Notes: generated from the letters alone by a model not told the origin. 64,000 bases of DNA from Macrostomum lignano (GCA_002269645.1 NIVC01000208.1:124001-188000), one strand, 5' to 3'. Positions 1 to 61,066 are shown, counted from the stretch's first letter. Numbers and translations are program-made.

Positions 1-1213
<1,213 letters not shown>

Positions 1214-3213
1214 GGCTAATATGGTTTGCTCTCCTAAGAAAATAGTTTTTATTACTACTTAGACTTGCTTTTTACAGTTCAGAGGTGTTGGTTTGGTGTA
1301 GTTTCGTGTCCGTGCTACAAGAATTATACACTCAATACGTTTCTGAGCCAATCAGCTTCTTAGCCTCTGAGATGCCAATCCGAACATTGCATTGCCTCAA
1401 AATTCTTAGAGCCAATGGTAGCCGGAGCAAAACGGTTGCAGCTGGTCCACCTGTGTGTCTGAACTGCGACCGTTGTTCCTATCCTGCCATATAGCCTCCC
1501 AAACACTACACTTATCTGACAACTGCCATTTAGCAACATGACCGGCTAAAACTTGAATCTAGTCAGGAAAGTGGCATCGATATACATTATGCGAAAATGC
1601 AACTCAGGAAGTATCATGCCAATATTTTGTCACAGTCATGGCTAGATTACATCAATGCGTATTGTTTTGCTTTTATTTATAGGAGGTTTCACTGTTTCAG
1701 CACAAAAAGTTAAATTGCTTTTGATAGGAGGCATACCCAGTTTTCATCTTTTGAGATGTCCTGCATTTCTTATGGCTCTACAAGCTGTTGAAACCCGCGG
1801 ATTCTGAACCCGCTGAATTCCAATCCCCGGAACTATTTCGACCTGCATTCTTAAATCTGAAGTCATACCTAAAAAACTCGCTAATACTTAGGATAGAGGT
1901 AGACATAAAATGAAGTAAATTCGTGTTGCATGAAGATTTGAGTGAAGCATTGATCTCGTCGGCTGGGGTACAGCGCAGAATGTCAGGCAACGTCTGTCTA
2001 AAGCAGGCATTGGCAAACCCGGTCTCTGGCCCCTGCCTCTCTCTACGTCCCTTTAGTCCTTTGAAACTTCTCTATCTTCTCATCTCATCTCTCCTTTCTT
2101 CTCTTTTATCTTTGCTTTCTTATCTCTTCTCATCTCTCTCTTCTCTTTTCTCTCTCATTTCTCTTTTCTCTTTCGCCGACCCCTGCTTCGAAAGCCGGTT
2201 TTTGGAACGGATTACTCTCATGGTTGCTTCATTCCGTTAGCCTCTTGCTGACTGCTTCGATCACGTCATCTTTCTGGTCAATTTGCAGCCCTGAAAGGAA
2301 TTTGTGTATCACCAGCTCCACTGCAGTCTGCAGCAGTCTTACAATCAAGGAAATGCACATTTCTTTGAAGGCATTTAAATTTTAAAGTATCTTTAAGTGA
2401 GACTTTGTGTTAAAATTTCCATGGCGTCAAAATTTGGTAGGTTTGTATTGTAATCGCTTTTTTATAAATTTTTCGCTTTTACAAAACCATGCTGCATTGC
2501 CTTGATTTGCCATCCACTGGTAAACTGCTGCAGAGTTTGCTGCCTGTGTTAGAATTCCTTTAACCTAGCGAGCAAGATTGTACACACAGTTTTTATTTTT
2601 ATAGTTAGAGAAGATTGATATTCATAGAGCTTTCCGTCTAGAAGCCAAAAGCAGGCACTTAAAGACAGCTGAGCACACAAATTTATTCCGCTCGTCCAAA
2701 AAAACCTCCAGAAATCCTCTGGTAGGAAAAAAAGACGAGCGGCTTGCATGGGACGTCCGAGTGCTTTCAGTATTTATTAGTTCGTAATTAGCCGGAATTG
2801 AAAACCTTTTGAGTTGTCTGACTGCAAAGTCAGAAGCAGTTAAAGATTCAATAATCAGTTAAATAACAGTTCAGTTTGACGTGATTTCAGGAAGAAAACA
2901 GCAAAATGGTTTTTAAGCATGAAAGCGAAGCTGATCAGAAATCTAACAAATCTTGAGTGAAAGTCACAACGATTCGCCTTGACATCGCTTGGGTTTCAAG
3001 CTATGCACTTTAAAATGCGCATACACTACTAGTGATTCGAAGTTGGTGAGTAGTATTGAAACTGATTAATTGGTTTAACAGCATAATGTAAAAATTGATT
3101 ACATATAGAAGAGCGCTCTAATCAAATTAAGGGTTGTGAATATCCTAAACAGTGACCGTCAGAGTAAAAATATTACTGGCCAATCCCCACTTCAACAAGC
3201 GGTTGCAGTGGCA

Positions 3214-4681
3214 TCAGGTGCGCGAGTCGCAGGCGGCCGACTCCAGAAGCACGGACACGAAGCCCTGGTCGACGGTCCAGGTGCTGCCGAACACGCAGCC
3301 GCCCCTGCAGAAGGAGCCACCGCCGCCGCCGCTGTGGCCGAAGCTCAGTCCGGCTCCGCCACCGCTGAAGCCTCCGCCAGCTCCAGGGGCGCCTTTCAGT
3401 GAGCTGGTCCTGCTGCCGCCTCCACCGCCTCCTCCGAAGCCTCCATGGCAGACGCTGCCGTCTCCAGCGCTGCCGCCGACCAAGCCGTCGGCCAGACTGC
3501 CGCCTCTCTCTCCGTCCGAGGAGCTCCGTCTGGGGCTGACGGCCCTGCCGAGCCAGCCGGCGCCGCAGCCGCCGTGGTTGCTTTTGCTTGGGGTGCTAGC
3601 GGGGCTGTTGGAGCCCGGCTGACCGTTGGTGCCGCCGAATCCCGCGTGTGCGCTTTTGGCGCCCTTGCTGTCGGAACCGTTTCTGCCGGCCTCTCCTTGT
3701 TGTCCTACATTGACATCAATCAAACTGCTGATTGAAACGGTTGTGGATTCTTTTAATTTACCATTTAAGAAACTGTTGTTATTTGACCTAACCATTTCTA
3801 TTCCAGGAAGCTCCGCCGCCTCCGCCGGCAGCCAGCAGCAGCAGCTGGTCGACCGTCCGGTACACGAAGCTGCCGCCGCCTCCGCCGCCTCCTTCGTAAT
3901 CCAACGACGTCGAGCCGCCCATCTGGCCCACAACGATGCTCAGCTGGGTGCCGGCCGTCAGGTTGACTCTGGCGCTCACCTGGGCTCCCTGGCCTCCGGA
4001 TGTGTTCGTCAGTAAGTTGTCGCCACCTCTGGCGCCGGCAGCTCTGATCAGGTAGCAGCCGGTCGTGTTGATGAGGACGCTTTGGATTGAGCCGTTGCGG
4101 CCTGTGCTGCTGTCTGCAATGGAACAGCGTCAGCGAGTTACAAAATTGGATTGAATGCAATTTCGGTCTCTGCCGACATCATGTAGCCATCCACAACAAT
4201 GCATTGATGACTCACTCCGAAGCTGCACTGCAGGCGAAGGCCAGTCGCTGTCGTCCGCCTTCCACACCTTCGCACCGACCTGAGATCCGATGACTCGCTG
4301 CACCTGATTTGCTGAGATTGACAGCTTGGCGGTTGCTATGGTGACCATCTCGCACGTGGCATTGCTCTCCACCGAGACGGCAGCGCTGCAGCTCACCCTC
4401 TGGCACTTTGCTAGACAGTCGATTACAGTAGTGGCCTTGGTTGTAGTCGTGACGTTGTTGTAGTCGTTCAGAACGGCTTTGAGCATGTGAAGCTGCTGCT
4501 CTGAGCACACAGAATAGGTCCGCACACTGGTGGTGCCTTGTACTCGAAGCACGAGAGAGCAGCAAACTATGTAAATAATAAACAGCATGCACTGAATAAC
4601 TGAAAAACGGTTTTTAAGTTCAGGTGGCAGTTACTTACCGAATAGGGCAAGTAATTGTGAAGACAAAACTTTTTCAGTCAT
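3214..4681 (-). CDS. Secreted PAN-like + ALK/LTK-type glycine-rich domain protein, copy G1 (401 aa, 4 exons)
   Basis: Exons 4681-4639, 4566-4216, 4113-3793 and 3704-3214 total 1206 nt and give an open frame with consistent phase-1 GT-AG introns. Signal peptide MTEKVLSSQLLALFVCCSLVLRVQG; PAN-like DCLAKCQRVSCSAAVSVESNATCEM; glycine-rich-domain motifs GSIQSVLINTTGCYLIRAAGARGG, LSIVVGQMG, GGGGGGGSFVY, LLAAGGGGGA, GGFGGGGGGG and GGGGGSF...GFVSV. Exon 3's donor (GTTAGG) is weak. Confidence 0.8.
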
Positions 4682-5089
4682 GATTGCAGTTGATAGGTTG
4701 ATTGTCAGTCTTCAATTTGTTGCGATTCTTCGTGAACAAAGACTTAAGAGATAACTATTTTACCTGGCTTTTGACTGTTGAAATCCCAAATCAATTACTC
4801 ATACGACGTATAGAGTTTACACTTGCAGGAGGGAAGCAGATTTCGTTTGCTGCTAATTGTTTCTTGCTTGCTCGCTTCTGAGAAGAGGCTTGCTAGAGAC
4901 TATATCAAATAGATGTGGAAGAAAGTTTGAGCAGTGTCGGGTTCGCAGCCAATCCCAGACGGCTGTCCTAGCTCATGGCTCAGGAGCTTTATCTACCGAT
5001 GATTCTTGAGCGCTGCTCTGCGACAGTTTCTAAAATAATAATTGCAGGAGGATTGTCGTCCGACCATTAAATTGGGCAGACGCCAATAC

Positions 5090-5152
5090 TGTACACACGC
5101 TCTCACATGGTGTACAGCGGCCCTGACTTTCTAATCGTCAGACATGTACACT
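5090..5152 (-). mobile_element. Internal fragment related to SINE family 2
   Basis: tgtacacacgctctcacatggtgtacagcggccctgactttctaatcgtcagacatgtacac aligns by eye with the middle of the SINE at 17873-18233. Confidence 0.5.
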
Positions 5153-7984
5153 CTAGACATGTAGTCCTCGACTGCATCGCACAGTGTCGTAGACCCGCCT
5201 CGAACTGAATCGAACCAGGGTTCGTGGCGGCTTCGTTGCGCGAGAGCTACACTTGTTTACTAGTTTTAGAACTTTCTTAGACCAAAGAGAAGCTGGCCTT
5301 ACAATGTGGAGCTGTTTTGTAAGAACTTTTTCTTCAACTTGCTGAAAAAGCTTCAAATTTGCTAAAAGTTTTCTAGAAACTTCGAATTAGATAACGTCTG
5401 TTCGAATAGTTCCATGCAATGCAAAACCTGATTTTTTTAATTAGTTGTGAGATTCGATGACTTGATTCAAGGTGTCTGTGTGAATGAACCTTCAGACATA
5501 GGTTGGCTGATACGTCCAATGATTTGCATCTCAGTTGAGCAGCAACGGTGTTGGAGGATTGCACTTCACCACAGAACAACTTGCAGTTGCACAGCTCGCA
5601 GCAGGTACATTAGCATGCATGCAGGATGTCATCGCTGTCCGCAGTTATTTTCGGGATTAGCCTCAACTAAAAGCACATGCAAGAGAATTCGTAGGCATGA
5701 AATAAAAAACATCATGCTGAAAATCTAGAAGAGTCAATATCTTTTCATACTGGATTTTTTTACACATCGTTACGACGGCAGCTGAACAAAATTAACAACT
5801 TTGTATAGACATGCGACAGACATCCTGAGTTGTGTGAGGTGCCCTGCTTCAGTGAAGTGCCGCCAGTAATGAGTGGGGACTTGCAGCAGCTGCAGTCAGG
5901 AGCACCGAAGTCGCAGAACAACCTAACTCTCAGCCAGCTCCATCAATAGATGATTCTGTGTGCTGCTACTCAGAAATGAGTTCCATTGTTATCGGCAAAT
6001 TTTGCACTAGGGCTGAGATAATTGGCGTCCGACTTGAAAATGAGATAATGCACAGTAAGATAGATGAGACACCTGCTCCAACCGGCATGAAGATGAGTAG
6101 ATACATAACGAGAAAGATGAGATACCTGCTCCCACAGACTTTCAGATGAGGAGATTGGCGTCAATGTTAAAGGATAAAGCAGCACCACTGCAGTCTATAG
6201 GTCTAATTGGAGAGATAAGAGGGTAGGCAGGTAATTTGCGGAGGAGCAGACGGGTAGGCCGGGTGCACAGTCGCCAACCATAATACCGATAATTGCCTAC
6301 CGGATAAGCCTGGCCTTCACTGAGTACTTGAAAAGGCGTGAAGGGAGTATGCAATTCTTAAAGAAGTCACATGGGAGCCTTAGCAGCTACTAAGCTGCTG
6401 TATGCTTGTATAAATATGCTCATTTAAACTGAAAAGGCAGCCTGGCATTATACCTGCAGAGGGTGAGGTGCTGTGCATTTGGAGTGAGACGTCCCGTTGC
6501 GCCAATGTTCTTATCAACCGCCTTCCCCACTCCGTCATGAGGGTATAAAAGTTGATGAACTGTGAGGAGTTTATGAAACTCATGCACCCATGCCACTGCA
6601 GCAAGTTGTTCTGCTTCTAAGAAGTATACTAAAGTAAATACGTGAGGTTGGGTGCGGTTTTCAAAATAGGACTTGAAGGTAATGGCAACTCGTCTGCGTT
6701 CGAACTCACGCGTTTCAAATCGGAAAATTTGGCGAAATGTACTCTTTGAATCCACCTGGTTACTCCGTCTGCCGGGTCCTCAATTCCGGGCGGAGGGTAT
6801 AGTAGAATCGTAGTCGAGCGGTCGCTAGCATTGTCGTTCAGGCTTTCAGACACCGATTTGATCTCGGTCGATTTTCTCGTATGCTTACTAAGAGTAGCGT
6901 AGTGCTGCCGCCACCGTAATTAAAGTATAGGGACCGTTCGTTCTCAGAGCTTCTTCGAGTTGAGAATTTTAAGTTTTAGGTCCCGTGGGGAAATAATTTA
7001 CAAACAAAACTATCAAGTCAACGATAATTAAATATGAGTTTATTGGGTTACTTAGGTTTTCTGAGAGAGAAACGGCAGTGCCACGGCGCGGGAGAAGCTA
7101 CAAGAAAAAGCAAGGAAAAGGGAAAAGTTGAAAACTGACCTGTTTACTGCGGGTTTTAAATGACGCAAAAGGGTTCCGGGAGTCGAACTCACAGTTTCTT
7201 TTCGATGGGGCATAGAGTGCCCAGAAAATTTGGCGAAAGGTGAAAATCGCAAAATGTCGTAAAGGAGAAGCCAAAGGGAATCCAGACTGAGGACAAGTGG
7301 AGTCCAGCAGCGGGATGGCGAAAAGTCCCGACGGGGGAGGGAGAGAAATCCCGGCGGTGGGCCCTCCGGATGACGAAATTTGACGTCATTGAGGTCCTTC
7401 CTGTGGTTACACAAATTTCAGCATGCACTAAATAAGCAAAATTTAACTAGAATAAAAGTCATAGTGGTAGGCCCACTACCACATGCTCACCGTGTGTGCT
7501 ATCAGAGTTTTTTTGGGCCAAGCCACTAAAGACTAAATCAGCTGGAGAAGTGAGGTTAGCCTGGAGGAGAGCACAGAGCGCGTACACCGCGAACAGTTCG
7601 CTCAGACCATGAGGGGAAAGAATTCATAAACTCGAGCTTTCGTCAGAGCCGCATAGGAAATTAACCTCTAGAGTTTAATTGAAAACAAATCTCAATCTTA
7701 CTCTCAGTCTCAGTCTCAGTCTCAATTCGAATCAATTCGAATCAATTCGAATCAATCAGTCAGTCACACCGCGTAGAGGCTAAAGTATTCAATTATCGAA
7801 AGTCCAGAAATCTAAATTGTTGTAGTCTATTCTATTTCTAATGTACATCAAACTAATGTACATGCAGATTCACAGTATTTTAGTGCACGTTGCTCTCTGA
7901 ACAAACTCTTTGGATCTCATATAGATAAATCGCAAAAAATGCCCAAGTGTGGGAGTGGGACCAACTTCTTATTCAGCAAACCTT

Positions 7985-9050
7985 CCTGGAATCCTGCTGA
8001 GATGTCAAAGCTTACAGCTGAGGGAATTGCTGGGATGTCAAGGCTTACAGCTGAGGGAATTGATGGGATATCAAGGCTTACAGCTGAGGGAATTGATGGG
8101 ATGTCAAGGCTTACAGCTGGGGGAATTGATGGGATGTCAAGGCTTACAGCTGGGGGAATTTCTGGGATGTCAAGGCTTACAGCTGTTGGGATTGCTGAGA
8201 TGTCAAGGCTTACAACTGGGGGGAATTGATAAGATGTCAAGGCCTATTATGGAATTGCTGAGATGTCAAGGCTTATGGGGAATTGCTGAGATGTCCAGGC
8301 TTACAGGGGGAATTATTGAGATGTCAAAGCTTATTGGGAAATTGCTGGGATGTCAAGGCTTACAACTGGGGGGAATTGATAAGATGTCAAGGCTTACAGC
8401 TGGGGGAATTGCTGAGATGTCAAGGCTTACGGGGAATTGCTGGGATGTCCAGGCTTACAACTGGGGGAATTTCTGGAATGTCAAGGCTTACAGCTGAGGG
8501 AATTGCTGGGATGTCAAGGCTTACAGCTGGGGGAATTTCTGGGATGTCAAGGCTTACAGCTGTTGGGATTGCTGAGATGTCAAGGCTTACAACTGGGGGG
8601 AATTGATAAGATGTCAAGGCCTATTATGGAATTGCTGAGATGTCAAGGCCTATTATGGAATTGCTGAGATGTCAAGGCCTATTATGGAATTGCTGAGATG
8701 TCAAGGCCTATTATGGAATTGCTGAGATGTCAAGGCTTTTGGGGAATTGCTGAGATGTCCAGGCTTACAGGGGGAATTGTTGAGATGTCAAGGCTTATTG
8801 GAAAATTGCTGAGATGTCCAGGCTTACTAGGGAATTGCTGGGTTGTCAAGGCTTACAGTTGGGGGAATTGCTGAGATGTCAAGGCTTACAGCTGGGGGAA
8901 TTGCTGAAATGTCCAGGCTTACAGGGGGAATTGGTAAGATGTCAAGGCTTGCAGCTAAGGGAATTGCTGAGATGTCAGGCTTAGTGGGGAAATTTTTTAG
9001 ACTTCAAGGCTTAGCTGGGGGAATTACTGAGATATCAAAGCTTATTGGAA
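7985..9050. repeat. 33-bp minisatellite (GAGATGTCAAGGCTTACAGCTGGGGGAATTGCT, with 29-30 bp variants)
   Basis: Tandem units are directly visible; the MSRLTAGGI-type ORFs are translations of it. Confidence 0.95.
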
Positions 9051-9619
9051 GTATGGCTCTATTCTTTAATATTTTAGCAATGTTTTCATTTTCTTTTTTG
9101 CACTCCCCGAACGGGCTGGATTGCTAGTAACAACTAAAATTGAAGGACGCGATACTCAATTTTTTTAGAAATGAACGGGAGGCTGCTAAGGAACGCATAT
9201 TTGTCTTATCGTTCATTCATAAAAATAGTCATGTGAACTTATGAAATACATGTACTGTAGAGTGTTCCACCTCCCGTAAAAAAGACATAAAAATGGTCAC
9301 TGTACTACTCACACATTTTATTCAGTAGTATACTAAATAGCATGTATAAAGATATGCGCTGAACCAGACATATATTTTATTCAACCAATCAAAAGAGAGA
9401 AAAGTCGAACATGTTATTTTTGGCAACCAACCAATCATGCGTGACCTACAATTGTCGAGTTAAATCCCATTTGCGATTCATCATTGGCCACGTGCAACCT
9501 ACGTTTGTCAGTTCAAACCCCACCTACGATTCGTCATTTGGCTTGCACCCGGTCTGCACCGGATGAACCAATCAAACGCGACAGAAAAACACCAGATACG
9601 GTAACTAATCATGTGTGTT

Positions 9620-10320
9620 TTACAGTAGACTAGTTGCATAACTTTCTGCCCTGTCATGCTTGACAACCACTGAATCGTGACCCTTTGACATTTGCGAAGA
9701 CAGTGATGTACGACCTCGAGAGAGGCCCGAACGCCTATAAATACAAGTGGTCCGGAACGGACCTGGAGCCAACAATTTCTCCTCGAGAGAAGAGCTCCGA
9801 AGAGGAAGCCACAGTCGGACTTCCTGGACCAAGACTCGGTCGAGTTGTTGCGGTAAGCCTTCCTTATTTGCGCCCGTTGTTGTTAGAGATGTCTCACTCA
9901 AGTCCAGTGTGACTTGAGTTTAGTTTGAGTCGGTTGAGACTCTTGAGTCTGTTTAGACTCTACTGGTTGCAGTCTCCAGAAGGACTGCCCCTGATAGATC
10001 TTAGAAGACTATCAGTGGTTTCCGGAGCTATTCCTAGAGAGCATAGAGGCACTGCTAGAAGGAGGCTTAATTAAGACCGCAGTTTGGCGCAGGGTACCCA
10101 TTGTAATTGGAAGCTTCCCATTGGTCCGAACGATAGATTCCGGCCGGAACTACTTCTACGGAAGAGAAGGGAACTCGGACCTGATCTACGAACACTAGAC
10201 GTCTAGAAGCCGGCGAGATCTACTATCAGATCTGCACTGAGGACTACACCGAAGTCTGCTCAAGAAGCATCGAGACTACTAATCCGGATTTAAGGTAATT
10301 AAGTACCTGCAGTTAACTTA
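9620..10320 (+). other. Possible retroelement LTR/leader-like segment (unclassified)
   Basis: CCAAT boxes upstream (aaccaatca), cctataaata at ~9734, a transcribed-looking leader and donor-like sites (gcggtaagc, aaggtaatt). No partner LTR or coding domain was found. Confidence 0.25.
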
Positions 10321-11163
10321 CTGGGTTGCCTAGCTACAGAGCTAGAAGTGATTGTTCCTTGATTACAGTTGAGGACTGGTAATAAGGAACACATCAGTAC
10401 ATGCATACTCTCGTAGTTTAGAGAAACATTGAGCAAGAGTTTAAAGCATTAAGGTGTGACAGTGTGATTCGCTGAGGCATGTATCATATCGTATTTCATT
10501 GTGTCGCACGCATACCGTACTTGTAATCATTCATTCATTTAACAATATTCTATACTTATTAATGTTGCGCTTATGTTACTTTTGTATTTGTAGTTATTTG
10601 TCGCCTCGTATGTATTTATTATATTATTAAAATTTCATGCCTATCGTCTTACTTCTCGTAAAGTAGTACCTATCTATGTACATGTATTTACTTTGCAGTA
10701 TTCTAGCACGATATTTTATCGATTTGTTTGTACATTTCGCCTGGGGGTTTGTCTGATCAGCTAGGGCTTGTTTTCGGATTAGGCTTGTTTATCAATTGCT
10801 ATCATATTTACATGTTCATTATAAATATACACTTGCAGGAGTTGCAGTCAGCGCCCGCTTGTTCACTTCTTCTCTGCTCGCGGGCCCTTAGCCGTCTGGC
10901 TTTCCTCGCCCTCACAAGTTAAACCTTCCGCCGCCTACCTAGGCCCACCAATCAGCAGGGTCCCGACCGGCCTTCGCCAGGCGCAACCAGAGCCCATTGC
11001 AATTAAGTTTATTAAGAACCAATTTACATTACGCTAGTGTGAAATTGCGGCTGCTGATCTGGATCGTTGACTCAATCAAATTAATTAAATTTATCCGCTA
11101 CACAAAAGTCTTCCGCATTAATCGTCACAGGTAGGAGTTGTCTCAGGACGATCCTGGGATGTA

Positions 11164-11479
11164 CTTTGACTTACTTGACTTAGCTACAGGGCGTCCCAAG
11201 ACGCAGCGGGGAGGCGAGCGTCGCCCATTCCGCTATTCCCTGAAAGGCCGGCGTAGGCTAGGGGCGCGGGGCCGGTCAGGGAGGTCTGCCGGTCCTGGCT
11301 GCAGCGTTGTCTTTTGTGGGGAAGACGGAGGCTCGTTTGGTGGCCCGGAGGAACCGGATGAGCCGTGGGATGTTCTCGGGCCAGCAAGCGTCGTCCAGGA
11401 AAGGGTTGGGCCCGAGGTGGTTGAGCCGGTCTCGGTTGAAGACCGGGCAGTAGCAGACGAAGTACTTGGCGTCTTCGCT
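11164..11479 (-). mobile_element. 5'-truncated non-LTR retrotransposon (LINE 3' end, 316 bp) with 15-bp TSD
   Basis: Direct repeat CGATCCTGGGATGTA at 11149-11163 and 11480-11494. Minus strand reads EDAKYFVCYCPVFNRDR...LG...L...P...LIRFLRATKR, resembling the C-terminal zinc-knuckle region of LINE ORF2, then a short UTR and an AAGTCAAGTAAGTCAAAG tail. Confidence 0.7.
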
Positions 11480-12317
11480 CGATCCTGGGATGTAGGAGTA
11501 CAAGATAAGGAGAAATAGGGTGCTCTAGAGAAGCACAGAAACTATCGACTATAACAAGGATATTGTAGAAGTAAAATGATTTGAAGATAAAAAATCATAG
11601 TAAATTAAGACCAATGCGTTTAAAACATACGCAGATAAGAGGTCTTTGACTTTATAACAAAGCAAATTTAAAAGTAAAGACGAGTTTTTCACATAATTCT
11701 GGATAAAGATAGAATTCTAGAGTTGAGACGTGAAATTTCGGGAAAAAATAGTTGAGAGCAAAAAGAAACGCTTTGATACACATTTTCTACGATGTAGCTG
11801 CATGAATTACCAGCTCCTGTGTGTCTGATGCACCTCAATGCTTTCCTATTCTCATGAATTCTTTTCGCTGTATCGTTCCGCCTGTGGATTTGGTGACAGG
11901 CTTGTCATCTTTCCCAGTATTTTTTTAGGATAGAAAAGCCTATGAAATTCAATCGGGATCTCACTCACGCGTCTTGTCTGTGCCCGCCTTTTGTATTTCT
12001 TTTCCTGCACTCAAGCCCGCCCTTAAAAAGCCCCTTGTGCCGCTCACAATTCACAGCCATCAGCAGTTGCCAGCAGCTTTTCTAACTTTCGCATACTTCA
12101 TCCCGATATTATCTTCAACCTAACCACGTCAATCCCACATTTACATTTTTGCCCAGCAGTTTATTTTTGCTGCTTGTGTTAGCAGTTCTCAGAAAAGCTA
12201 GCCAGAAGTACGCTCGTACCTCATAGTAAGAAAACCAAATACGAGTATTACTGAGTGCTACGATGACCACAAAGTGATAGCAATAGTTGACTTCACAGCT
12301 GACCGTTAGATTCGGAT

Positions 12318-12982
12318 TTAAATGTTAACGCACGTTTTCAGAGCTGCTGACCACTTTGTTCCAGACCCACAAGTCTTTTGCACATATTTACTACCGTCGC
12401 ATTGAAGAAATTTTGTTTCACTGGTGCAATCGGCCAGATAGGAGTTATCGAATGTGCAAGGCTGGTTGGCTAGAGAGCAGGGAAGCTGGCTGGTAGTGGA
12501 AACTGCAATTTCATGGCTAGTTGGAGCTGTGACACTGTTGGAGGCTGCAACAGACTCAATACTGTCGGTTGTATCAGTGACCAATCTCCTCTCATCTACA
12601 ACCTAAAGGAAACGATTGCATACGTCAATTTCTGTTACAATGTTTGGCTAATACAATTCATAATAAGAAATATTAACACAAGACAAAAAGAAATGACAGA
12701 GAGCCAACTGACCTCGCTGCTGCAGTCCAGGGGTCTCCACAGCGCCTCATGCTGAGCGGCAGTGGCCAGATAGCAAGTGCCGTCTCGCTTGAACACGGCG
12801 GTGCAGTTGGGTCGTACTGCGCACTCCACCGAGCAGGCGCGAGGGTCTCGGACTCCGCTGACCTGCGACAGGCCGGTCACGTTTCCGGGGCAACCGGAGA
12901 CGACGCGGAAGCGGACGCAGACACCGGACGCAACGGACAGCAGGCTGAGCAGGCAGCCTGCAACTTCTAGGCGTGAAAACAT
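12318..12982 (-). CDS. PAN/Apple-mucin family copy P2: signal peptide + PAN-like + short S/T linker + 6-Cys chitin-binding-type-2-like module (184 aa)
   Basis: Exon 1 12982-12713 (90 codons, GAG|gtcagt). Exon 2 12602-12318 (tttag|GTTGTAGAT, VVDERRL...CSLANQPCTFDNSYLADCTSETKFLQCDGSKYVQKTCGSGTKWSAALKTCVNI*). Phase 0, frame intact. Confidence 0.85.
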
Positions 12983-15059
12983 GGCTATTATGGCTTGCTT
13001 TCCTAAGAAAATAATTTTTTAGTACTCAGACTTGCTTTTTAGAGCTGGGACGTGTTGGTGTAGTTTCATTTCTGTGCTGCACGAATTATATACTCATAAT
13101 ACGTTTCTGAGCCAATTAGCTTCTCAGCCTCTGAGATGCCAATCAGAAGATTGCATTGCCTTAAAATTATTGGAGCCAATGCCTGCCGGTGCAAAACGGT
13201 TGCAGCTGGTCTACCTGTGTGTGTGAACTGCGACTTTTAACCGTTGTTCCTAGCCTGCCATATTCTCCTACGTGTAGACAAACCGCACCTAACTGACAAC
13301 TGCCATTTAGCAACAGGAATTGAACTAGAGGGGCGCAACGAATCTGCAGTGTAGCTAATGAAGACATCAACTTAGTCAAAAAACAGGAAATATGCAAAAT
13401 GTCAGAAAGCTGAGATGGATCAATGCCAGTAAAAAGAATAATACTCCATTTTGCAGCGATCACTAAAAGCTCAACGCGCTGTGCAAACTCTCAGGTTGTA
13501 CAAACAGAGCAGCTGCTGAATGTAGATTCTTTGTTTGAGTTTCACAACCGGATCTGAAATTCGCTCAAATAATGGAGCCTATCCTAGTTTTGGACTGGGA
13601 TCAAATGGCTCTAAACGAAATTTGCACAACTTTTTCAAATAGCGCTTCATCGGTGCAGTCAACTGACATATCCAGACCAGGTTCTCCAAAGTGAATTTGA
13701 AATGAGGATATTGACAAACATCCAAAAATTTATGAATACAAAAATTTATATTGGATTTACTTTATTCTATTGGAAGAAACATGGCTTGTATGAATTCGAG
13801 ATAAGCGCTGCGAAGTTTTCATGCTTATGACAGTAGTATGATTGTGGTAGGTGGATTTAATTATTATAAACTATTCCACCGATGTCACCAAGTTGTCGGA
13901 GGGGTATTTAAACTGAGTTGGGAATCCTACAATTGCCACCAAATTGTGGTAGTGCTCTGAAGCTCTAAATTTTTATTCTAATAGCTGACAACAAGTTGTT
14001 GTAGGTAATTCTTATGCTTATTCACAATTTCACTGCTATTACCAAGTTGTGCTGGGGTGAAATTTGCTATAATTCTAGAATTTTATAAATTAGCTATTCG
14101 ATGCGTTATAAGTTACTAAAATATTGGGTCACGGGGTTAGGATTATGGGCTTTCACGTAAGCACGGATTGCCCTGGTAGCGCGCAGTGCCCGAGCGGCAA
14201 GACACTGTTCAGCTAGGGGGAGAGGGGGGGTGACTAAGTCCTATAGCAGCGTCCTCCAATGGATCGAGTTTGCCCGGTGAATTTCAATTTCCTCTTACGG
14301 ATTTGCTTTTGTCATATACGACTTTCCATTGGTTGTTCAGTTCGAACAGTTTATTTGGATATTTTTCCTCTTTCTATTGGCTGATTACGCCTCTGCTCTT
14401 TGCTAGTACGCTATTGGCTCTTCGACAATTCGTCTCTTGCTCTTGGTAATTTCTACCTCTAGTCCAATGAGCATTCGCTCTTAGTTTTTAGCAAATGAAG
14501 GAAAGTTTGGAACACTTCTTCGATTTTTATAGGCAATTCACCTATGAATCAAAAGATCTAAACTTCGGTTAGCCTCTCTGGGCGCAAAATTCGCTTGTAT
14601 TTATAGGAAAATTGGGGTGGGGGGCAAGACACGTTCAAACTAAGTTTTTCTAAAATTTACGTTTCCATGGTGAAGGCGGGAATTTGAAACTCGGCCTCTC
14701 TCATGATTTCATATTTCACAAAAGCGAACGTTCTGTAATAAATTTACAAACTAATAAATAGCTATAAAATAAGCTATTTTGAATCCGCAATGTTCTAAAA
14801 TATGGATTTTGAACCCGCAGAATTCAAATACCCGGAACTATTTAAAATGCATTCTTAAATCTGGTCATACTCAAACAAAAACTTGCTAATACTTAAGATA
14901 GAGGAAACATAAAATGGAGTACATTCGTGTTAAATTAAGGTTTGAGTGAAGCATTGATCTCGTCGGCTGGGGTGCCGCGCAGAATGTCGGGCAATGTCTG
15001 TCTAAAGCAGGCATTGGTAAACTCCGGTCTCTGGCCCCTGCCTCTCTCTACGTCCCTTG

Positions 15060-15548
15060 AGTCCTTTGAAACTTCTCTATTTTGTCATCTCAACTCTCCT
15101 TTCTCCTCTTATATCTCTGCTCTCTTATCTCTTCTCATTTCTCATCTCATCTCACCTCTCTCCTCTCTTCCCTCTTGTCTCTGCTGTCTACTCTATCTTC
15201 TCTCACTTCCCTCTTCCCACTCCTCTCTCCTCTCTTCCCTCTTCTCTCTTCTCTCAAATCTCTCATCTCTTTTCCATTCTCTCTCTTCTCTTCTGTCTCC
15301 CCTCTCTCTCCTCTCTTCTCTCTCGTCCTTTCCTCTCTCATCTCTTCTATATTCTCTTTGATCTCTACACTCTCTTCTCTCACTCCCCTCTTCTCACTTC
15401 TCTCTCCTCTCTTCCCTCTCGTCTCTCCTCTCTTTTCTCTCCTCTCTTTTCTCTCCTCTCTTTTCTCTCCTCTCTTTTCTCTCCTCTCTCCCGTTTTCTC
15501 ACTTCCCTATTCTCTCCTTTTATCTTCTCTCCTTTCTCGCCTCTCCTT
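15060..15548. repeat. CT-rich low-complexity tract (expanded relative to the paralogous tract at 2040-2175)
   Basis: Degenerate (CT)n/(CTT)n sequence. Confidence 0.9.
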
Positions 15549-17872
15549 TTGTTAAACAGTGCAAGTCGAGAGCAAAGAGTTTGCGAGGCGAGACGAAAGT
15601 GCCAAGAGCACTGGCATACAACGATATTATAAGCGACGTTTATTAGCAGCCCCCCCCCCAACACAAGGGCTAAAACACCTACAGTGTAGATTAAAGTCAC
15701 GATAGAGCAGAGACGTGCAAAGAGCGTGAGCACAAACAAAGGGCGCACGTACAGGGTTAAAATCACAAACGATACACGGAATAAAAGCCCACGCCCAACC
15801 CCCCACGCAGCAGGCCCAACACCTTTCTTTACTAATCTTGTATTATTTCTCCTTTCCACTCTCATCTGGCCCGCAGCCATGAGCTGGACTCTTCATCTGG
15901 CCTTTGAGGTAAAATTCTGCCGACCCCTGCTCCGATAGCCAGTTTTTGGGACGTACTCTCATGGTTGCTTCATTCCGTTAGCCGCTTGCTGACTGCTTTG
16001 GACACGTCATCTTTCTGGCCAATTTGCAGCCCGATAGGAATTTGTGTATTACCACTGGTGATCTCTGGTCATCACCAGCTCCAGTGCAGTCTGCTGCAGT
16101 CTAACAAATTCAAGGAAATGCACATTTCTTTGAAGGTCATTTAATTTTTAAAGTACCTTTAGGTGAAACTTGGTGTCAAAATTTCGATGATGTACCTAAC
16201 TTAGTCAGATTGTGTTGTAATCGCTTTTTCATAAATGTTTCGATTTTAGTTTTACAATAACCATGATGCTGCATTGCCTTGATTTGCCATCCACTGGTGA
16301 ACTGCTGCAGAGTTTGCTGCCTAGGTTAGAATTTCTCACTAAACTGTCATGGCTAAACGTAGCCTCTCCACGAAGGTGCAGAGAAGGCTATATATAAAGT
16401 CATTCCAAAACATTGTACATTGCTATGTACATTCAGCCCTATCGCCTGACCCTTGGTGAGCGGGAGCGGGAATGTATGGGTGAGCGGCCTAACACCAGAA
16501 AAAGCAGAAAAACTTCACATTTTACTGTTTCTGTTTTGATTAAGTTACAGAGTCGAGACTTTATATTTAGACAGAGAATGAGTCAATGAAGAATTGTGTC
16601 AAGTTTGAAGTCAATCGCTTAACGTAGAGCAAACTTATGGAAGCCGAATTTTTAGTCAATTTTGAAAACCCATTTTTCCACACCTGGCCATGCCAGATAA
16701 GGGGGAGAGAGAGGCGGAGATTAGGGTGGTTGTCTCTCTGACAAAAAGCAGACAAAGTTTAAAAGTGCACAGCGCCGTTCAAGATTAACTCTGAGATTTT
16801 TAAATTTTACACGATTGTGTCAAAATAGTTGAAAAATTTTTGGTTGAAATGTGAAGATTGGTAAAACTGGAGCGGCGCTATTGAGGATTTAGTAAAAAAT
16901 CGCGCATTTTGAGCAGTTTTTTTTCACTTTTAGGTAGAAAGACTTGGATTTAGGAAACTTTAAGGTAGCCTAAGAAATTTTCCGTAGTGTATGAAGTTAG
17001 GGTGGTGTGACAGTTTGTGTAATTTGGTTTAGCGGTTTGGAAGTCCATAGTCAACAAGATTGTGTAGAGAGTTATTAAACCATACCGCAATGCCCTACTT
17101 AGAGTAATATTCTAAGAAATTCAATTTATTCTAGAATGAGTCATATCTATTTTTAGGAATCATGCGCAAACAGAGTGATTTGGAACCCCACGTGGGACCC
17201 CACGGTTTCATCAAGGAACCGGTTTCCAACAGCTGTATTTGCTTAACCCCATATATGGTAATGCTCAAACATACATGACAGCTTAATCAAGTATGAGTGA
17301 CCTAAGTAAATATCCGACCCCAAACCGGTTTTTCCCCAAAAGTTTGCTATAAATATAAGTGAAAATCCGAGTAAAAAAATCAGACTCAGAGCGGTCTCTA
17401 AGAAGACTCCGAAGGAACAAAGAATAAGACCAATCTCTGAGGGACCACACTTGTCTAATTGGAAAGCGCTTACCAGCTTTAGTTCTTTCATTGTTAGCGT
17501 TAATAAGTTGATTAATTGAGTTTAGGAGAGCCGTTTATTGTCGGAACATTTGAGAAAGGCCTCCTTGTTTCCTAGGATATATTAATAGAGGATTTATTGA
17601 TTTAATTGACTTATCCGTTACGTTTCGGACGTAACGAAAAAAACGCCCTTCAGGAGGACCTGTCACAGAAACTCGATCGATTCGATTGTTCTTTAGGGCG
17701 CACGTTCTATTGTTAATTCCGAGCTCGAGGACCGTCAAGAAGTTCTGATTCGCTCTCGTTTTTGGTCAACCCCCAGATAAAAGTCGAGGACTCCCGGAGG
17801 TAACGAGTCACCAAGCCAAACCAAGCCGTCTACAAGCCACTAAGGATCCGCTGCAGTAAGAGCTATTTGACA

Positions 17873-18233
17873 TTTTTTTTAGAGGCAGGGGGGCTGTGTG
17901 CACCCTGGCGCAATTTAAGCGTCATTGGCACACAACCGGCGAGAGGCATTACTGCCCATTCCGCCGACTCCCCTGAGCAGGCATACAAGCGCGCGGATAC
18001 GTTACGCAGGCACACACTCACACAGGAGTGTACAGCGGCCCTAACTTTTATCAATTGTTAGGCATGTACACTTTACTGCGCCTTGGGGGGTTGGCTCTCA
18101 AGGCCGTTAATTGCACGAGCAGAGCCAAGCCGAGATTCCAATCCAGCCCCAAATTAATGTGGCTGCACTTGGAATCGAGCCTGGGTCGCGGCACACCAGA
18201 GCAGCTGCGCTACCGCTGGGCTACGGCCCCCCC
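17873..18233 (-). mobile_element. tRNA-derived SINE family 2, full length, 11-bp TSD
   Basis: Reverse complement of 38997-39358. TSD GCTATTTGACA at 17862-17872 and 18234-18244. Poly(A) tail appears as a T-run at 17873-17880. Confidence 0.85.
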
Positions 18234-19076
18234 GCTATTTGACATTACTAATACCTAGGCACTTGTTCCCAGTGTCTAGAAGTGGGGGTTTTTGAGTGAC
18301 TGATCACCACTCTTAAACTCTTCAATTGCACACACACACAGTTTTTATTTTTATAGTTAGAGAAGATTGATTTTCATAGAGCTTTCCGTCTAGAAGCCAA
18401 AAGCAGGCACTGAAAGACAGCTGAGCACACAGATTTATTCCGCTCGTCCACAAAAAACCTCCAGAAATCCTCTGGTAGGAAAAAAAGACGAGCGGCTTGC
18501 ATGGGACATCCGAGTGCTTTCAGTATTTATTAGTTCGTAATTAGCCGGAATTGAAAACCTTTTGAGTTGTCTGAGTGCAAAGTCAGTAGCAGTTAAAGAT
18601 TCAATAATCAGTTAAAAAACAGTTCAGTTTGACGTGATTTCAGGAAGAAAACAGCAAAATGGTTTCTAAGCATGAAAGCGAAGCTGATCAGAAATATAAC
18701 AAATTTTGAGTGAAAGTCACAACGATTCGCCTTGAAATCGCTTGGGTTTCAAGCTATGCACTTTAAAATGCGCATAATCTACTAGTGATGAGAAGTTGGT
18801 GAGTAGTTAAATTTACATGTAACTCAACTCTAAAGTCCAGCACTAGTCACTATGTTCTCATCCCAAGCAGTAGTATTGTGCGAATATGTTTGAATTCAAA
18901 GTTCTGCGAATTAAGGTATTGAAACTGATTAATTGGTTCAACAGCATAATGTATAAATTGATTACATATAGAAGAGCGTTTTAATCAGATTAAGGGTTGT
19001 GAATATCCTAAACAGTGACCGTCAGAGTTAAAGTATTACTGGCCAAACCCCACTTCAACAAGCGGTTGCAGCGGCA

Positions 19077-20583
19077 TCAGGTGCCCGAGTCGCAGGCGGC
19101 CGACTCCAGAAGCACGGACACGAAGCCCTGGTCGCCGGTCCAGGTGCCGCCGAACACACAGCCGCCCCTGCAGAAGGAGCCGCCGCCGCCGCCGCTGTGG
19201 CCGTAGCCCAGTCCGGCTCCGCCACCGCTGAAGCCACCGCCAGCTCCAGGGGCACCTCTCAGTGAGCTGGTCCTGCTGCCGCCTCCGCCGCCTCCTCCGA
19301 AGCCTCCATGGCAGACGCTGCCGTTTCCGGCGCTGCCGCCGACCCAGCCATCGGCCAGACTGCCGCCTCTGTCTCCGTCCGAGGAGCTCCGTCTGGGGCT
19401 AACGGCCTTGCCGAGCCAGCCGGCGCCGCAGCCGCCGTAGTTGCTATTGCTTGGGGTGTCAGCGGGGTTGTTGTAGCCCGGCTGACCGTTGGTGCCGCCG
19501 AATCCCGCGAAGGGGGCGTGGCTACCCAGGCTGTCGGAACCGTTTATCCCAGTCTCTCCTGGTTTTCCTGCGGTGAAATCAGCCAAACTGCTTATCCGAG
19601 TGGATTTTGCTTATCATATTTTACAATTTCTAGCAACTGCAGCTACTAAGCTCACCATTTGTAAAGCTGGAAGCACCGCCGCCTCCGCCGGCAGCCAGCA
19701 GCGGCAGCTGCTGGTCACCCGTCCGGTACACGAAGCTGCCGCCGCCTCCGCCGCCTCCTTCGTAATCCAACGACGTCGAGCCACCCATCTGGCCCACAAC
19801 GATGCTCAGCTGGGTACCGGCCGTCAGGTTGACTCTGGCGCTCACCTGGGCTCCCTGGCCTCCGGATGTGTTCGTCAGCAAGTTTCCGCCACCTCTGGCG
19901 CCGGCAGCTTTGATCAGGTAGCAGCCGGTCGTGTTGATGAGGACGCATTGGATTGAGCCGTTTCTACCTGTGCTGCTGTCTGCAATGGGACCGCGTCAGC
20001 GAGTTACAAAACTGGAGTGAATGCAATTTCTGTCTGTGCCAAATAATGGTTACCACTCAACACTAAGACTATGCATTGATGACTCACTCCGAAGCTGCAC
20101 TGCAGGCGAAGGCCAGTCGCTGTCGTCCGCCTTCCACACCTTCGCACCGACCTGAGATCCGATGACTTGCTGCACCTGATCTGCTGAGATTGACAGCTTG
20201 GCGGTTGTTATGGTGACCATCTCGCACATGGCATTGCTCTCCACAGAGACGGCACCGCTGCAGTTCACCCTCTGGCACTTTGCTAGACAGTCGATTACAT
20301 TAGTAGCCTTGGTTGTTGTCGTGACGTTGTTGTAGGCGTTCAGAACGGCTTCCAGCATGTGAAGCTGCTGCTCTGAGCACACAGAATAGGTCCGCGAACT
20401 GTCGCCTTGTACTCGAAGCACGAGAGAGCAGCAAACTGCGTTTGGGCAATGAAGTCAGTATAGAACAGAGTGCAATTAAAAGCTTTAATTTAGACGGTCT
20501 TAAATATGATTAACTAATGAGCTGCATTTTAGTCACTTACCGAATAGAAAAGCAAGTTTTAATGACAAGCATTGCTCAGCCAT
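19077..20583 (-). CDS. Secreted PAN-like + ALK/LTK-type glycine-rich domain protein, copy G2 (401 aa, 4 exons)
   Basis: Exons 20583-20541, 20435-20088, 19979-19656 and 19567-19077 total 1206 nt in frame. Donors are gtaagt, gtgagt and gtgagc; intron 3 is 88 bp as in G1. Signal peptide MAEQCLSLKLAFLFVCCSLVLRVQG; same motifs as G1. Confidence 0.85.
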
Positions 20584-24974: not shown

Positions 24975-25231
24975 ATGAAGCCATTGTTGCGAATCTGCTG
25001 CCTGCTCAGCCTGCTGTCCGTCGCGTCCGGCGTCTGCGTCTGCTTCCGCGTCGTCTACGGTTGCCCCGGAAACGTGACCGACCTGTCTCGGAGTTCGAAA
25101 TTCTTGCACCTGCTCGGTGGAGTGCGCGGTGCAACCCAACTGCACCGCCGTGTTCAAGCGAGACGGCACCTGCTATCTGGCCACTGCCGCTCAGTATGAG
25201 GCGCTGTGGAGACCCCTGGACTGCATCAGCG
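24975..25231 (+). pseudogene. P4: PAN exon-1 pseudogene
   Basis: MKPLLRICCLLSLLSVASGVCVCFRVVYGCPGNVTDLS, then a frameshifting deletion. The downstream nucleotides still match [37 protein letters not shown]. No normal donor and no exon 2 found. Confidence 0.8.
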
Positions 25232-26298: not shown

Positions 26299-27359
26299 TC
26301 AAAAAGTGTCAGCTGTTGTTGGAGCAGTGTCAGCTGTTGTTGGAGCAGTGTCAGCTGTTGTTAGAGCAATGTCAGCTGTTGTTGGAGCAGTGTCAGCTGT
26401 TGTTAGAGCAATATCAGCTGTTGTTGGAGCAGTGTCAGCTGTTGTTGTAGCACTGTCAGCTGTTGTTGGAGTAGTGTCAGCTGTTGTTGTAGCACTGTCA
26501 GCTGTTGTTGGAGTAGTGTCAGCTGTTGTTGTAGCACTGTCAGCTGTTGTTGGAGCAGTGTCAGCTGTTGTTGGAGCAGTGTCTGCTGTTGTTGGAGCAG
26601 TGTCAGCTGTTGTTGGAGCAGTGGTTGAGGCGGAGCAGTGGTGGTGGTTGAGCTGGAGCAGTGGTTGAGGCTGGAGCAGTGGTTGAGGCTGGAGCAGTGG
26701 TTGAGGCTGGAGCAGTGGTTGAGGCTGGAGCAGTGGTTGAGGCTGGAGCAGTGGTTGAGGCTGGAGCAGTGGTTGAGGCTGGAGCAGTGGTTGAGGCTGG
26801 AGCAGTGGTTGAGGCTGGAGCAGTGGTTGAGGCTAGAGCAGTGGTTGAGGCTGGAGCAGTGTCAGTCTCGGAACTTTTTTCCTCAGTAATCTTGGATAGA
26901 AGCCGATCCTCAACGACCTAAAAATGAGTGAAATTGACTCAAAAAATTCCGAAATCTCAACTTGTTTTAAAGAAATTGTTTCATTTGCAGGTAAAATACT
27001 TGTTGCATTACCCCAGCACGCACTTTTGCTTTTTTGCTGCAAAAATTATCTAAAAACAATTGAATCACAAGGCAAGAGATACCGACTGACCTGCAGTCCA
27101 GGGGTCTCCACAGCGCCTCATACTGAGCGGCAGTGGCCAGATAGCAGGTGCCGTCTCGCTTGAACACGGCGGTGCAGTTGGGTCGCATTGCGCACTCCAC
27201 AGAGCAGACGCGAGGGTCTCGAACTCCGTTGACCTGCGACACGTCGGTCACGTTTCCGGCGCAACCGTAGACGATGCGGAAGCGGACGCAGACTCCGGAC
27301 GCGAAGGACAGCAGGCTGAGCAGGCAGTAGGCCCGACCAAGCATACCGTAACGATTCAT
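26299..27359 (-). pseudogene. P5: PAN + ASTTAP and TAPTTAD mucin repeats, frameshifted
   Basis: Exon 1 27359-27091 lacks 7 nt at its end (TGCAG|gtcagt, phase 2 rather than phase 0). Exon 2 starts at 26917 (tttag|GTCGTTGAGGAT, VVEDRLL) with 18-bp then 21-bp repeats and two further 1-nt losses near 26630-26650. Stop at 26301-26299. Confidence 0.7.
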
Positions 27360-28335: not shown

Positions 28336-28569
28336 ATGAAGCCATCGTCGCAGGCCAGCGTCTCCTACCGACTCCGCGTCGTCTCCGGTTGCCCCGGAAA
28401 CGTGACCGACCTGTTTCAGGTTAACGGAACTCGAGACCCTCGCGTCTGCTCGGTGGAGTGCGCAGTGCGACCCAACTGCGCCGCCGTGTTCAAGCGAGAC
28501 GTCACTTGCTATCTGGCCACTGCCGCTCAGTATGAGGCGCTGTGGAGACCCCTGGACTGCAGCAGCGAG
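28336..28569 (+). pseudogene. P6: PAN exon 1 with the hydrophobic core of the signal peptide deleted in frame
   Basis: [78 protein letters not shown]|gtcagt. All six Cys are retained; exon 2 was not located. Confidence 0.7.
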
Positions 28570-30094: not shown

Positions 30095-31549
30095 TAATTA
30101 TCTTACCATTCTTGTTTTTTGGTAATTTTTGAATTTATGAAGATTTTTGTAGCTTTTTTTCCCAAGATATTACTGTAAGTAGTGAACAGTCGAGGAAATA
30201 CCTGAGTCGGGTTCAGACGCTGAATGCGTGATTTTTTCGTGGGTATATAAAGGAAATCGAAACGTAGACAAGAGCACAGATAAGCAATTGTCACTGGGCA
30301 CAAGATAAGGGCCTTTCGAGGTCTGCCAGGTTAGAGTCTGCGAGCTCGATTCGGGTTCCTGGCTGAAATCGTCCCCGCGACTGAGTGACAATGCAGGATA
30401 GGTTATCCACAGTGTGGGACCTGAGCATCGATTCACCGTGTGGATCTAACTTGGGCGCCGTTCTGACTCTCTTCGGCAAGTTTTTTTTGCTTGTTGTTCG
30501 TTACCTTCACTATTGCTTAATGTTCTTTTTGCCTTATTTGCTAGTCTAAGTTGGGTCGAGGTTGCAGCGGCTGCCCGTTCCCTCTGTTTACCCCATAGCT
30601 TGTTTAAGATCGGGGGATTTCCCTGGGCTGCTCTGGGTAGTTCCGGTTCAATCCGAAAATCGTGAAGGTTTGCATTATGCGCCTTATTGAGCCAGCCGAT
30701 GCCCAGGTCTAGTATCCTATCTGCAACCATAGGCATTTCCGCTAGCTCATGTAAGAATTTAGTTTGCGTGTAACTGGGAGCACCATAGCATAATCTCAGG
30801 GCTAGATTTTGGGTTTGTTGGAGTTTGGTAATGCTGTCATTTCTGAGTACTTGGAGAATTGGTGCCCCATAGGTCATGGTGCTCTCAACATATGCTCTGT
30901 AGAGCATTTTTAGTGTCTCACTGCTGAGTTTAGTAAGTTTGGAGATTCGATGGATTGACATAACAAGTGCCCTGCATTTGGTGATTACAGCCTCACAGTG
31001 GGGTTTCAGGGTGAGTTTATAGTCAAGGTTGATGCCCAGAAATTTCACTTCTTTTTGGTAGATTAAGGACGCGTCACCTAGTTTCAGTTCTGGCCTAATG
31101 TCCCTTCTAGTCGGGTTCGCTGGGGCATAGGAAAAAACTATGGCTTGACTTTTACTAGCGTTTATTTTGATACCTTGTTCTCCGCACCAGGCCCAAAGGC
31201 TGTTTAGGTAGGGTTGAACTACATTTCGGAGTTCTCCGAAAGACTTGGCAGATGGCCAGATGGCCATGTCATCTGCAGATTGACTTTTCCTAATGTTTGG
31301 ACGACCCGTATGGGGCATTGTGCTAATGAAGAGCAGGTATAAGAAGGGGCTGAGTATACCTCCCTGGGGAACGCCTGCCATAATTTGAAACGAGTCACTA
31401 AGGATGTTGTTAACCTTGACCCGAAAACTCCTGTTCTCAAGGTAGTTGGAGCAGATCCTGGTGATGGCTGTTGGCAAGTCTACGTGGAACATTCTATACC
31501 TAATATAGTTGTGGACCATCGTGTCAAAGGCACCCTCCACATCGAGAAA
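30095..31549 (-). mobile_element. 5'-truncated LINE reverse transcriptase (Jockey/I-like group), RT motif A to C-terminus
   Basis: ORF 30446-31645 contains FLDVEGAFD, GVPQGGILSPFLY, SADD (for Y/FADD), KFLGINLD and the typical thumb region LYRAYVESTMTYG...LQQTQNLALR. The sequence upstream of FLD belongs to the adjacent inverted-repeat arm. The 3' boundary is approximate. Confidence 0.9.

Positions 31550-58059: not shown

Positions 58060-61066
<3,007 letters not shown>

Follow-up and report, generated by a model that had tools for sequence, protein, structure and literature searches.

We analysed a stretch of 64,000 nucleotides (nt) from the flatworm Macrostomum lignano (GCA_002269645.1, NIVC01000208.1:124001-188000; hereafter the window), in which two related genes, G1 and G2, lie on the minus strand at positions 3214-4681 and 19077-20583. 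Each has four exons and a coding sequence of 1206 nt that translates to 401 amino acids (aa), according to models which we spliced by hand from the window sequence and then confirmed by script. All three introns of each gene are GT..AG and phase 1, and the general point that the encoded modules are carried on symmetric phase-1 exons holds for both. Re-splicing the two genes therefore upheld the original prediction, made from the sequence alone, of two 401-aa proteins with matching intron phases.

Exon 1 of G1 (4639-4681) contains the ATG, the first 14 codons and one further nucleotide of a predicted signal peptide, and ends at a GTAAGT donor; it is homologous to exon 1 of G2 (20541-20583), which likewise holds the ATG and the start of the predicted signal peptide, both being 43 nt long with identical phase and donor. 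Exon 2 (G1, 4216-4566; G2, 20088-20435) encodes the end of the signal peptide and a Cys-rich head, which in G1 together cover aa 15-131 on a symmetric phase 1-1 exon. The remaining two exons encode a TNF-like plus glycine-rich (TG) module: exon 3 (G1, 3793-4113; G2, 19656-19979) its N-terminal half, which in G1 comprises TNF-like strands and the first polyglycine runs, GGGGGGGSFVY and AAGGGGG, and exon 4 (G1, 3214-3704; G2, 19077-19567) its C-terminal half, made up in G1 of a variable loop region, the remaining polyglycine helices and the last two TNF-like strands (DQGFVSVLLE). Exon 4 also holds the stop codon, at 3216-3214 (TGA) in G1 and 19079-19077 in G2. In an alignment of the two proteins, 349 of 402 positions are identical (87%); that both have the same length is partly a coincidence, as it results from two single-codon indels of opposite sign. 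The UniProt entry A0A1I8GD17 of M. lignano is G1 (100% identity over 338 aa) and its model agrees with introns 2 and 3; G2 is without an exact database entry, its best match being 91.8% identical. Database models offer an alternative 5' end for G1, with an ATG at 4588 (MLFIIYIV...) inside intron 1 of our model, and either start leads to a predicted signal peptide and an identical mature protein.

The TG module is the ligand-binding part of the cancer-related receptors ALK and LTK, and the C-terminal 270 residues of G1 and G2 constitute a genuine and complete module of this type, as established by Pfam, by profile searches of the PDB and by Foldseek. G2 matches Pfam family PF12810 (ALK_LTK_GRD) over aa 148-373 with 33.9 bits (E 4e-8), above the gathering threshold of 24.5. 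When a single sequence was searched against PDB sequences, LTK was the only match (E 0.015), with GxIQ...GxYxIxAxGAxGG in register, and a family profile built from 84 members matched only ALK (4e-16), SCD-2 of C. elegans (2.5e-11) and LTK (3.8e-11) among 177,635 PDB sequences. The profile alignment covers the module from its first strands up to the closing one, in which DQGFVSVLLE is equivalent to GHGEVNIKHYL of ALK, and it is directly after this strand that the EGF-like module of ALK starts. Three stretches, G-I/V-Q..W/V..G.Y.I.A.GA.GG, GGGGGGSFVY and AAGGGGG, align in register with LTK and ALK.

For the structural comparison we used an AlphaFold model of the paralog P0001, whose identity is 85.6% to G2 and 88.4% to G1. 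The model has a mean pLDDT (predicted local distance difference test) of 78, with values of 82-97 over most of the TG and 67 in one block, and strands are predicted where the closing TNF-like strands are expected. The top 21 Foldseek matches of this model in the PDB were all TG structures of ALK, LTK or SCD-2 (E 1.5e-11 to 6.5e-7), with 314-354 aligned columns and target-normalised TM-scores of 0.44-0.63, the next match being a cyanophage fibre (E 0.08). Structures of human ALK (7N00, 7NWZ, 7LRZ), human LTK (7NX0, 7NX1) and SCD-2 (7LIR) thus share with the flatworm module the TG fold, non-glycine motifs and the order of elements, in which TNF-like strands at the N-terminus are followed by polyglycine runs and then by two closing strands, and they are its only significant PDB matches by both sequence profile and Foldseek. 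An ALK/LTK-type glycine-rich domain carrying GIQ and GGGGG motifs had been proposed for both genes; the domain was confirmed by the PF12810 hidden Markov model, the PDB profile search and Foldseek (on the paralog model), and the motifs by their alignment in register.

Both proteins are predicted to begin with a signal peptide and to end without an EGF-like module, a transmembrane (TM) helix or a kinase. The N-terminal 25 residues are the sole hydrophobic stretch (Kyte-Doolittle hydropathy of 2.0-2.1 in a 19-residue window), and their end, ...RVQG, fits the -3/-1 rule for signal peptides; elsewhere the same measure reaches at most 1.1, which gives no TM helix beyond the signal peptide in G1 or G2. 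There are 8-9 NxS/T sequons per protein, and the C-terminal 25 aa have a mean hydropathy of 0.25. The exon which completes the glycine-rich module, exon 4, also holds the stop codon, about 10 residues (one Cys among them) past the last TNF-like strand in both genes, and contains no GT[AG]AG donor able to bypass it. No Pfam EGF match was found in G1 or G2 to indicate an EGF-like module after the TG, a tblastn search for a tyrosine-kinase domain over the whole window gave a best E of 1.3 and no kinase exon, and downstream of G1 a separate gene of the PAN-mucin type described below comes next. UniProt models of G1 and its paralogs stop at the same residue, and P0127 (A0A1I8IUV7) also ends in ...AACDSRT. 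The earlier proposal of secreted proteins whose stop codon directly follows the glycine-rich domain is therefore in agreement with hydropathy, the in-exon stop, tblastn and Pfam; as far as the sequence allows, the resemblance to ALK/LTK is present and no sign of splicing onward to TM or kinase exons was found.

The head is about 105 residues long, is encoded by exon 2 and has five Cys, of which four are invariant across the Macrostomum family with the spacing C-x3-C-x4-C-x11/12-C. It had been described as a PAN-like module with four to five Cys. The Cys count stands, and in hhalign alignments to the PAN heads of coral proteins and of neighbouring genes (the latter referred to here as P-type) the Cys fall in register with C-x3-C-x5-C-x11-C of the coral PAN; these alignments, however, are not significant (E 0.026-0.051, probability 1-2%), and the Pfam PAN families PF00024, PF14295 and PF08277 gave no match to the heads or to full-length paralogs even at E<=10, where only spurious matches appeared. 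A predicted helix followed by a hairpin is located as a PAN core would have them. Local Foldseek matches of the full P0001 model included the HGF N-domain (E 0.33, probability 0.97, 70 columns) and the Sarcocystis apple-domain lectin SML-2, and some paralogs carry the UniProt name "Apple domain-containing". A head-only AlphaFold model (G2 exon 2, 13 sequences) was unusable, with a pLDDT of 50 and meaningless Foldseek matches to phytochromes (E>0.1). Taken together, these data weakly suggest that the head is PAN-like, possibly a very divergent PAN/apple fold.

A search of 5.8 billion proteins with a head profile retrieved only TG proteins of M. lignano, so that the head is without detectable partners elsewhere. 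It was seen only fused to TG, including in dispersed M. lignano paralogs which are as little as about 20% identical in the head, and because the same union is found at such low identity, the joining of head and TG appears to be old. It had been suggested that PAN heads were shuffled locally onto three different effector modules. We rejected this idea, as the G head and the neighbouring P-type head gave no BLASTP alignment at E<=100, tblastn of G2 matched none of the ten P-type exons, and the G head occurs only with TG.

G1 and G2 lie in a tandem segmental duplication. Copy 1 (873-4568) includes a P-type PAN-mucin gene (291-1262, minus strand) and then G1, upstream of that gene, and copy 2 (12641-20437), which has additional insertions, includes G2 and a minus-strand gene (12318-12982) that combines a P-type PAN with chitin-binding parts. 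The blocks 873-1538, 1799-2141, 2172-2556, 2582-3054 and 3053-4568 of copy 1 are colinear with copy 2 at 82-97% identity. Between G1 and G2 the ratio of nonsynonymous to synonymous substitution rates (dN/dS) is 0.75 at a dS of 0.11, every family-invariant residue is kept in both proteins, and intron 3 is only 61% identical, whereas exons 3 and 4 are far better conserved. Variable positions are clustered at aa 236-280, near the junction of exons 3 and 4, and immediately ahead of the first Cys of the head.

Two features of the duplication lie outside the coding exons. A 473-bp block 160-630 bp 3' of both stop codons (2582-3054 and 18334-18807) is 96.6% identical, which is more than the coding regions (90.7%), and could be 3' untranslated or regulatory sequence, the product of gene conversion or a shared young repeat. 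An insertion present only in the G2 copy (15148-15914) contains a CT-rich 177-bp repeat and a hydrophobic open reading frame (ORF) of 166 aa on the minus strand (15380-15880); this ORF was considered as a possible downstream TM exon of G2 and rejected, because the G1 copy lacks the insertion that contains it and because it continues into a simple repeat.

Relatives of the two genes are numerous in M. lignano. In UniProt they comprise A0A1I8GD17 (G1), A0A1I8IUV7, A0A1I8HRN4 and about 20 more clusters, with paralogs or alleles 79-92% identical, and further paralogs are named there with WSC and F5/8-C heads. The database models of the family are truncated or chimeric and carry automatic names, either 'Apple domain-containing protein' or 'receptor protein-tyrosine kinase'. 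The paralogs with the latter name (P0003, P0004, P0005, P0011-P0013, P0015, P0020 and P0122-P0126) are 177-341 aa long and PF12810 is their only precomputed Pfam annotation, so that the name appears to stem from the glycine-rich domain and is misleading.

Outside flatworms, the nearest relatives are coral proteins of 450-540 aa which pass the PAN_1 and PF12810 cut-offs and end right after the TG, such as Porites harrisoni ABFA07_017308 (P0049), Stylophora pistillata AWC38_SpisGene21703 (P0083) and the EGF-containing isoforms P0089 and P0061. Their TG modules are locally 44-47% identical to that of G2, and Stylophora P0083 is 33% identical over 93% of G2; identity between TGs of the G1/G2 type and those of ALK/LTK is 19-27%. 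The coral proteins share with G1 and G2 a signal peptide, an N-terminal Cys-rich head, a terminal TG and module boundaries that coincide with exon boundaries. In contrast to G1 and G2, their heads reach the PAN_1 cut-off, a short COLFI-like piece and in some cases EGF come after the head, their TG has an insertion of about 25 residues, and the TG of Porites is a single terminal exon rather than the two of the flatworm.

An exhaustive search of 1.84 billion representative sequences with the TG profile matched 6,501 clusters when the cut-off was E<=1e-3, of which 2,242 also passed E<=1e-10. In many of these clusters the TG lies at the extreme C-terminus and in some there are up to eight copies of it, and the architectures sampled were EGF plus TG, EGF repeats plus C-type lectin plus TG, PAN_1 plus TG (in a fused gene model) and tandem TG. 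Judged from these matches, kinase-less TG proteins are common in sequence space; since they include the coral PAN_1-TG proteins, G1 and G2 can be placed in an uncharacterised family of secreted head-plus-TG proteins. We infer that this family is old, shared with cnidarians and expanded in Macrostomum, and that G1 and G2 would not be recently truncated receptors. In the accessible literature we found no paper describing a secreted or kinase-less TG family. For this type, a catalogue of polyproline-II bundle domains names no members besides ALK and LTK (bioRxiv 10.1101/2023.11.25.568672), and in a sea-anemone multi-omics paper the Pfam names Gly_rich and PAN_1 appear among the abbreviations only.

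In structural studies of ALK and LTK, the TNF-like/glycine-rich module is portrayed as a peculiarity of receptors. Here the module ends small secreted flatworm proteins, which raises the questions of what the TG binds when no kinase is attached and whether the receptor borrowed the module. The soluble head-TG architecture that carries this ALK-type TG is already visible in databases and functionally uncharacterised. As M. lignano is a tractable model in which RNA interference, in situ hybridisation and transgenesis are established, the question of what the TG does can be addressed.

Starting from the gene structure, the homology and completeness of the TG and the absence of TM, EGF and kinase parts, all of which are observed, we consider it fairly probable that the locus holds tandem-duplicated genes for soluble secreted binders made of a head and a complete TG, members of an old kinase-less family. 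G1 and G2 would then be soluble, N-glycosylated, two-module secreted proteins, in which a small head with two disulfides, encoded by one symmetric phase-1 exon, precedes a TNF-like beta-sandwich braced by a polyglycine-II (PGII) helix lattice, with which the protein ends. As they have no catalytic motif, they probably act purely by binding, and from their sequence G1 and G2 are probably extracellular binders, which may serve in recognition or cross-linking as components of mucus, matrix or surface defence; lectin-like mucus components had been suggested earlier as a candidate role. Specificity would come from the hypervariable loop region of the TG (aa ~236-280) together with the head; a specificity-determining surface fits the fast evolution of the recent copies, with their differences clustered at aa 236-280. 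The genomic setting, among mucin-like genes with Pro/Thr/Ser-rich (PTS) repeats and next to a PAN-CBM_14/CBM_19 chitin-binding gene, is also in favour of extracellular binders.

Several known systems offer points of comparison. The ALK and LTK receptors differ from G1 and G2 in having an EGF-like module, a TM helix, a kinase, MAM and LDLa, none of which is found in the predicted soluble 401-aa proteins, and in an N-terminal region to which the head is unrelated. C1q-domain proteins, which are secreted and have a C-terminal recognition head of TNF fold, are a functional analogy only: they too combine secretion with a TNF-like jelly-roll module at the C-terminus, lineage-specific expansion and variable loops, but G1 and G2 are without a collagen stalk. 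The tips of phage PGII bundles (cyanophage Pam3 fibre, 7YPX; S16 gp38) similarly use a glycine-rich PGII lattice as a binding scaffold, and the Pam3 fibre was the best Foldseek match outside the ALK group, although at E 0.08 it was not significant; unlike G1 and G2, these tips lack the TNF-like sandwich and have a different origin. The neighbouring mucin-like P genes differ from G1 and G2 by the Pro/Thr/Ser-rich tandem repeats of 18 and 24 nt, which occur in other genes of the cluster and are absent from the G genes.

Several observations weigh against a pair of maintained TG binders. G1 scores only 20.2 bits for PF12810, under the gathering threshold, though it is 87% identical to G2, and its intron 3 donor (GTTAGG) is weak. 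The structural evidence comes from a paralog 86-88% identical to the two proteins and not from G1 and G2 themselves. The high Gly content of the TG region (28-30%) inflates compositional similarity, and the HMMER bias terms are large; glycine bias alone, however, does not explain the TG match, since conserved non-glycine motifs and beta-strands align too. Finally, a dN/dS of 0.75 also fits relaxed constraint on one copy.

A different use for the same glycine-rich region would be as a structural material, in which a rigid PGII lattice helps to build mucus, rhabdites, eggshell or another matrix, cross-linked through the head and an odd Cys. This would accord with the Gly content of the TG region, with the odd number of Cys in mature G1 (11), which makes intermolecular disulfides possible, and with the position of the G genes, which are clustered with mucin-like genes carrying PTS repeats and with a gene for chitin binding. 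However, the Cys count of G2 is even, both proteins are small and globular without repeats or polymerisation motifs, and the variable loop patch suggests recognition instead of bulk structure, so that we regard a structural role as unlikely.

It is improbable, in our judgement from the sequences, that G1 and G2 act as ligand traps, that is, as soluble TG decoys which bind a flatworm ALK-type ligand (Jeb/HEN-1-like or ALKAL-like) and damp ALK signalling. The TG is the ligand-binding part of ALK and LTK, it is retained whole in both proteins and these are predicted to be soluble and secreted, as a decoy would be. Yet their TG is 44-47% identical to that of the coral secreted TG proteins as against 22-27% to ALK/LTK, and being far closer to the former it does not look derived from a receptor gene. 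Moreover, the many paralogs with diverse heads are unlike a dedicated decoy, and ALKALs are vertebrate ligands.

Drift of one or both duplicates without maintained function would account for the dN/dS of 0.75, for the weaker splice signals of G1 (TAG acceptors in addition to the GTTAGG donor), for its sub-threshold Pfam score and for the frameshift of the neighbouring P gene (291-1262) relative to its paralog. We find this very improbable, as both 401-codon reading frames have stayed intact at about 10% nucleotide divergence with indels of whole codons, the family-invariant residues are all kept, and conservation is much higher in exons 3 and 4 than in the intron between them (61%).

We give very little credence to the idea that the transcripts extend beyond the 401-aa models, either into a P-type PAN exon upstream or into undetected exons downstream: P0127 (A0A1I8IUV7, 493 aa) does link a P-type PAN exon, which maps to 46009-45791 of the window at 97% identity, to a G1-like body with an acceptor near 4591, but that exon lies 41 kb upstream in a gene with its own signal peptide (MATISRNRLNFVVSVTCCSLLIALLIMPAVLS) and donor, the intermediate piece of A0A1I8IUV7 has a frameshift here, and a signal peptide would end up inside the fused protein, so that the entry looks like a chimeric gene prediction; at the other end there are the in-exon stop without a bypass donor and the independent gene that comes next downstream. 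The G1-side site of this junction is at 4565-4594 (minus strand).

Extracellular binders of the head-TG type thus remain our preferred reading, and it can be carried further, although only tentatively. The TG, which the literature takes as the hallmark of ALK/LTK receptors, may be an ancient secreted module that serves recognition on its own. The head-TG proteins of flatworms and cnidarians would then make up a class, so far undescribed, of soluble proteins for pattern recognition or ligand capture in which the loop at aa ~236-280 determines specificity, and the ligand-binding region of ALK may have been acquired from this pool.

Elsewhere in the window, the P-type exons together with their repeats form a cluster of PAN-mucin-like genes. 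About ten copies of the P-type PAN head exon (…CSVECAVRPNCTAVFKRDGTCYLA…) are present in all, at 891-1124, 12734-12916, 27108-27287, 35748-35930, 41210-41392 and 45791-46009 on the minus strand and at 25090-25209, 28369-28548, 47688-47801 and 50559-50741 on the plus strand. Several are followed by tandem repeats of 18 or 24 nt encoding Pro/Thr/Ser/Ala (455-841, 34629-35454, 40268-40996, 42923-44610). The gene downstream of G2 (12318-12982) encodes a signal peptide followed by a PAN head of the P type, which stays below the PAN_1 threshold (E 0.02), and its last exon encodes CBM_19 and CBM_14 (chitin-binding peritrophin-A), both above the Pfam cut-offs, followed by a stop. At 1130-1262 (minus strand), within the PAN-mucin gene that lies downstream of G1, the segment for the signal peptide (…VASGVCVRFRVISG) is not in frame with that for the PAN (CPGNVTDLSQ…), while the same two segments are contiguous in the paralog at 12635-12982; a frameshift, pseudogene status or an error in sequencing could account for this.

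Between G1 and G2, at 7995-9044, a 33-bp unit is repeated in tandem about 34 times and a higher-order unit measures 377 bp; several frames of this repeat are open on both strands. Two further minus-strand features appear to be transposon remnants: an ORF of 399 aa at 30446-31645 that by eye is like a non-LTR (non-long terminal repeat) reverse transcriptase, and an ORF pair at 55409-56521 with CCHC zinc knuckles (CYRCNRKGH…CKFCHKKGH) that by eye is Gag-like. On the plus strand, an ORF of 450 aa at 58060-59412 has a long stretch of acidic EEKAEETA repeats, with about 34 copies of a 24-nt unit, and a non-repetitive end, which may be the start of a beta-propeller protein.

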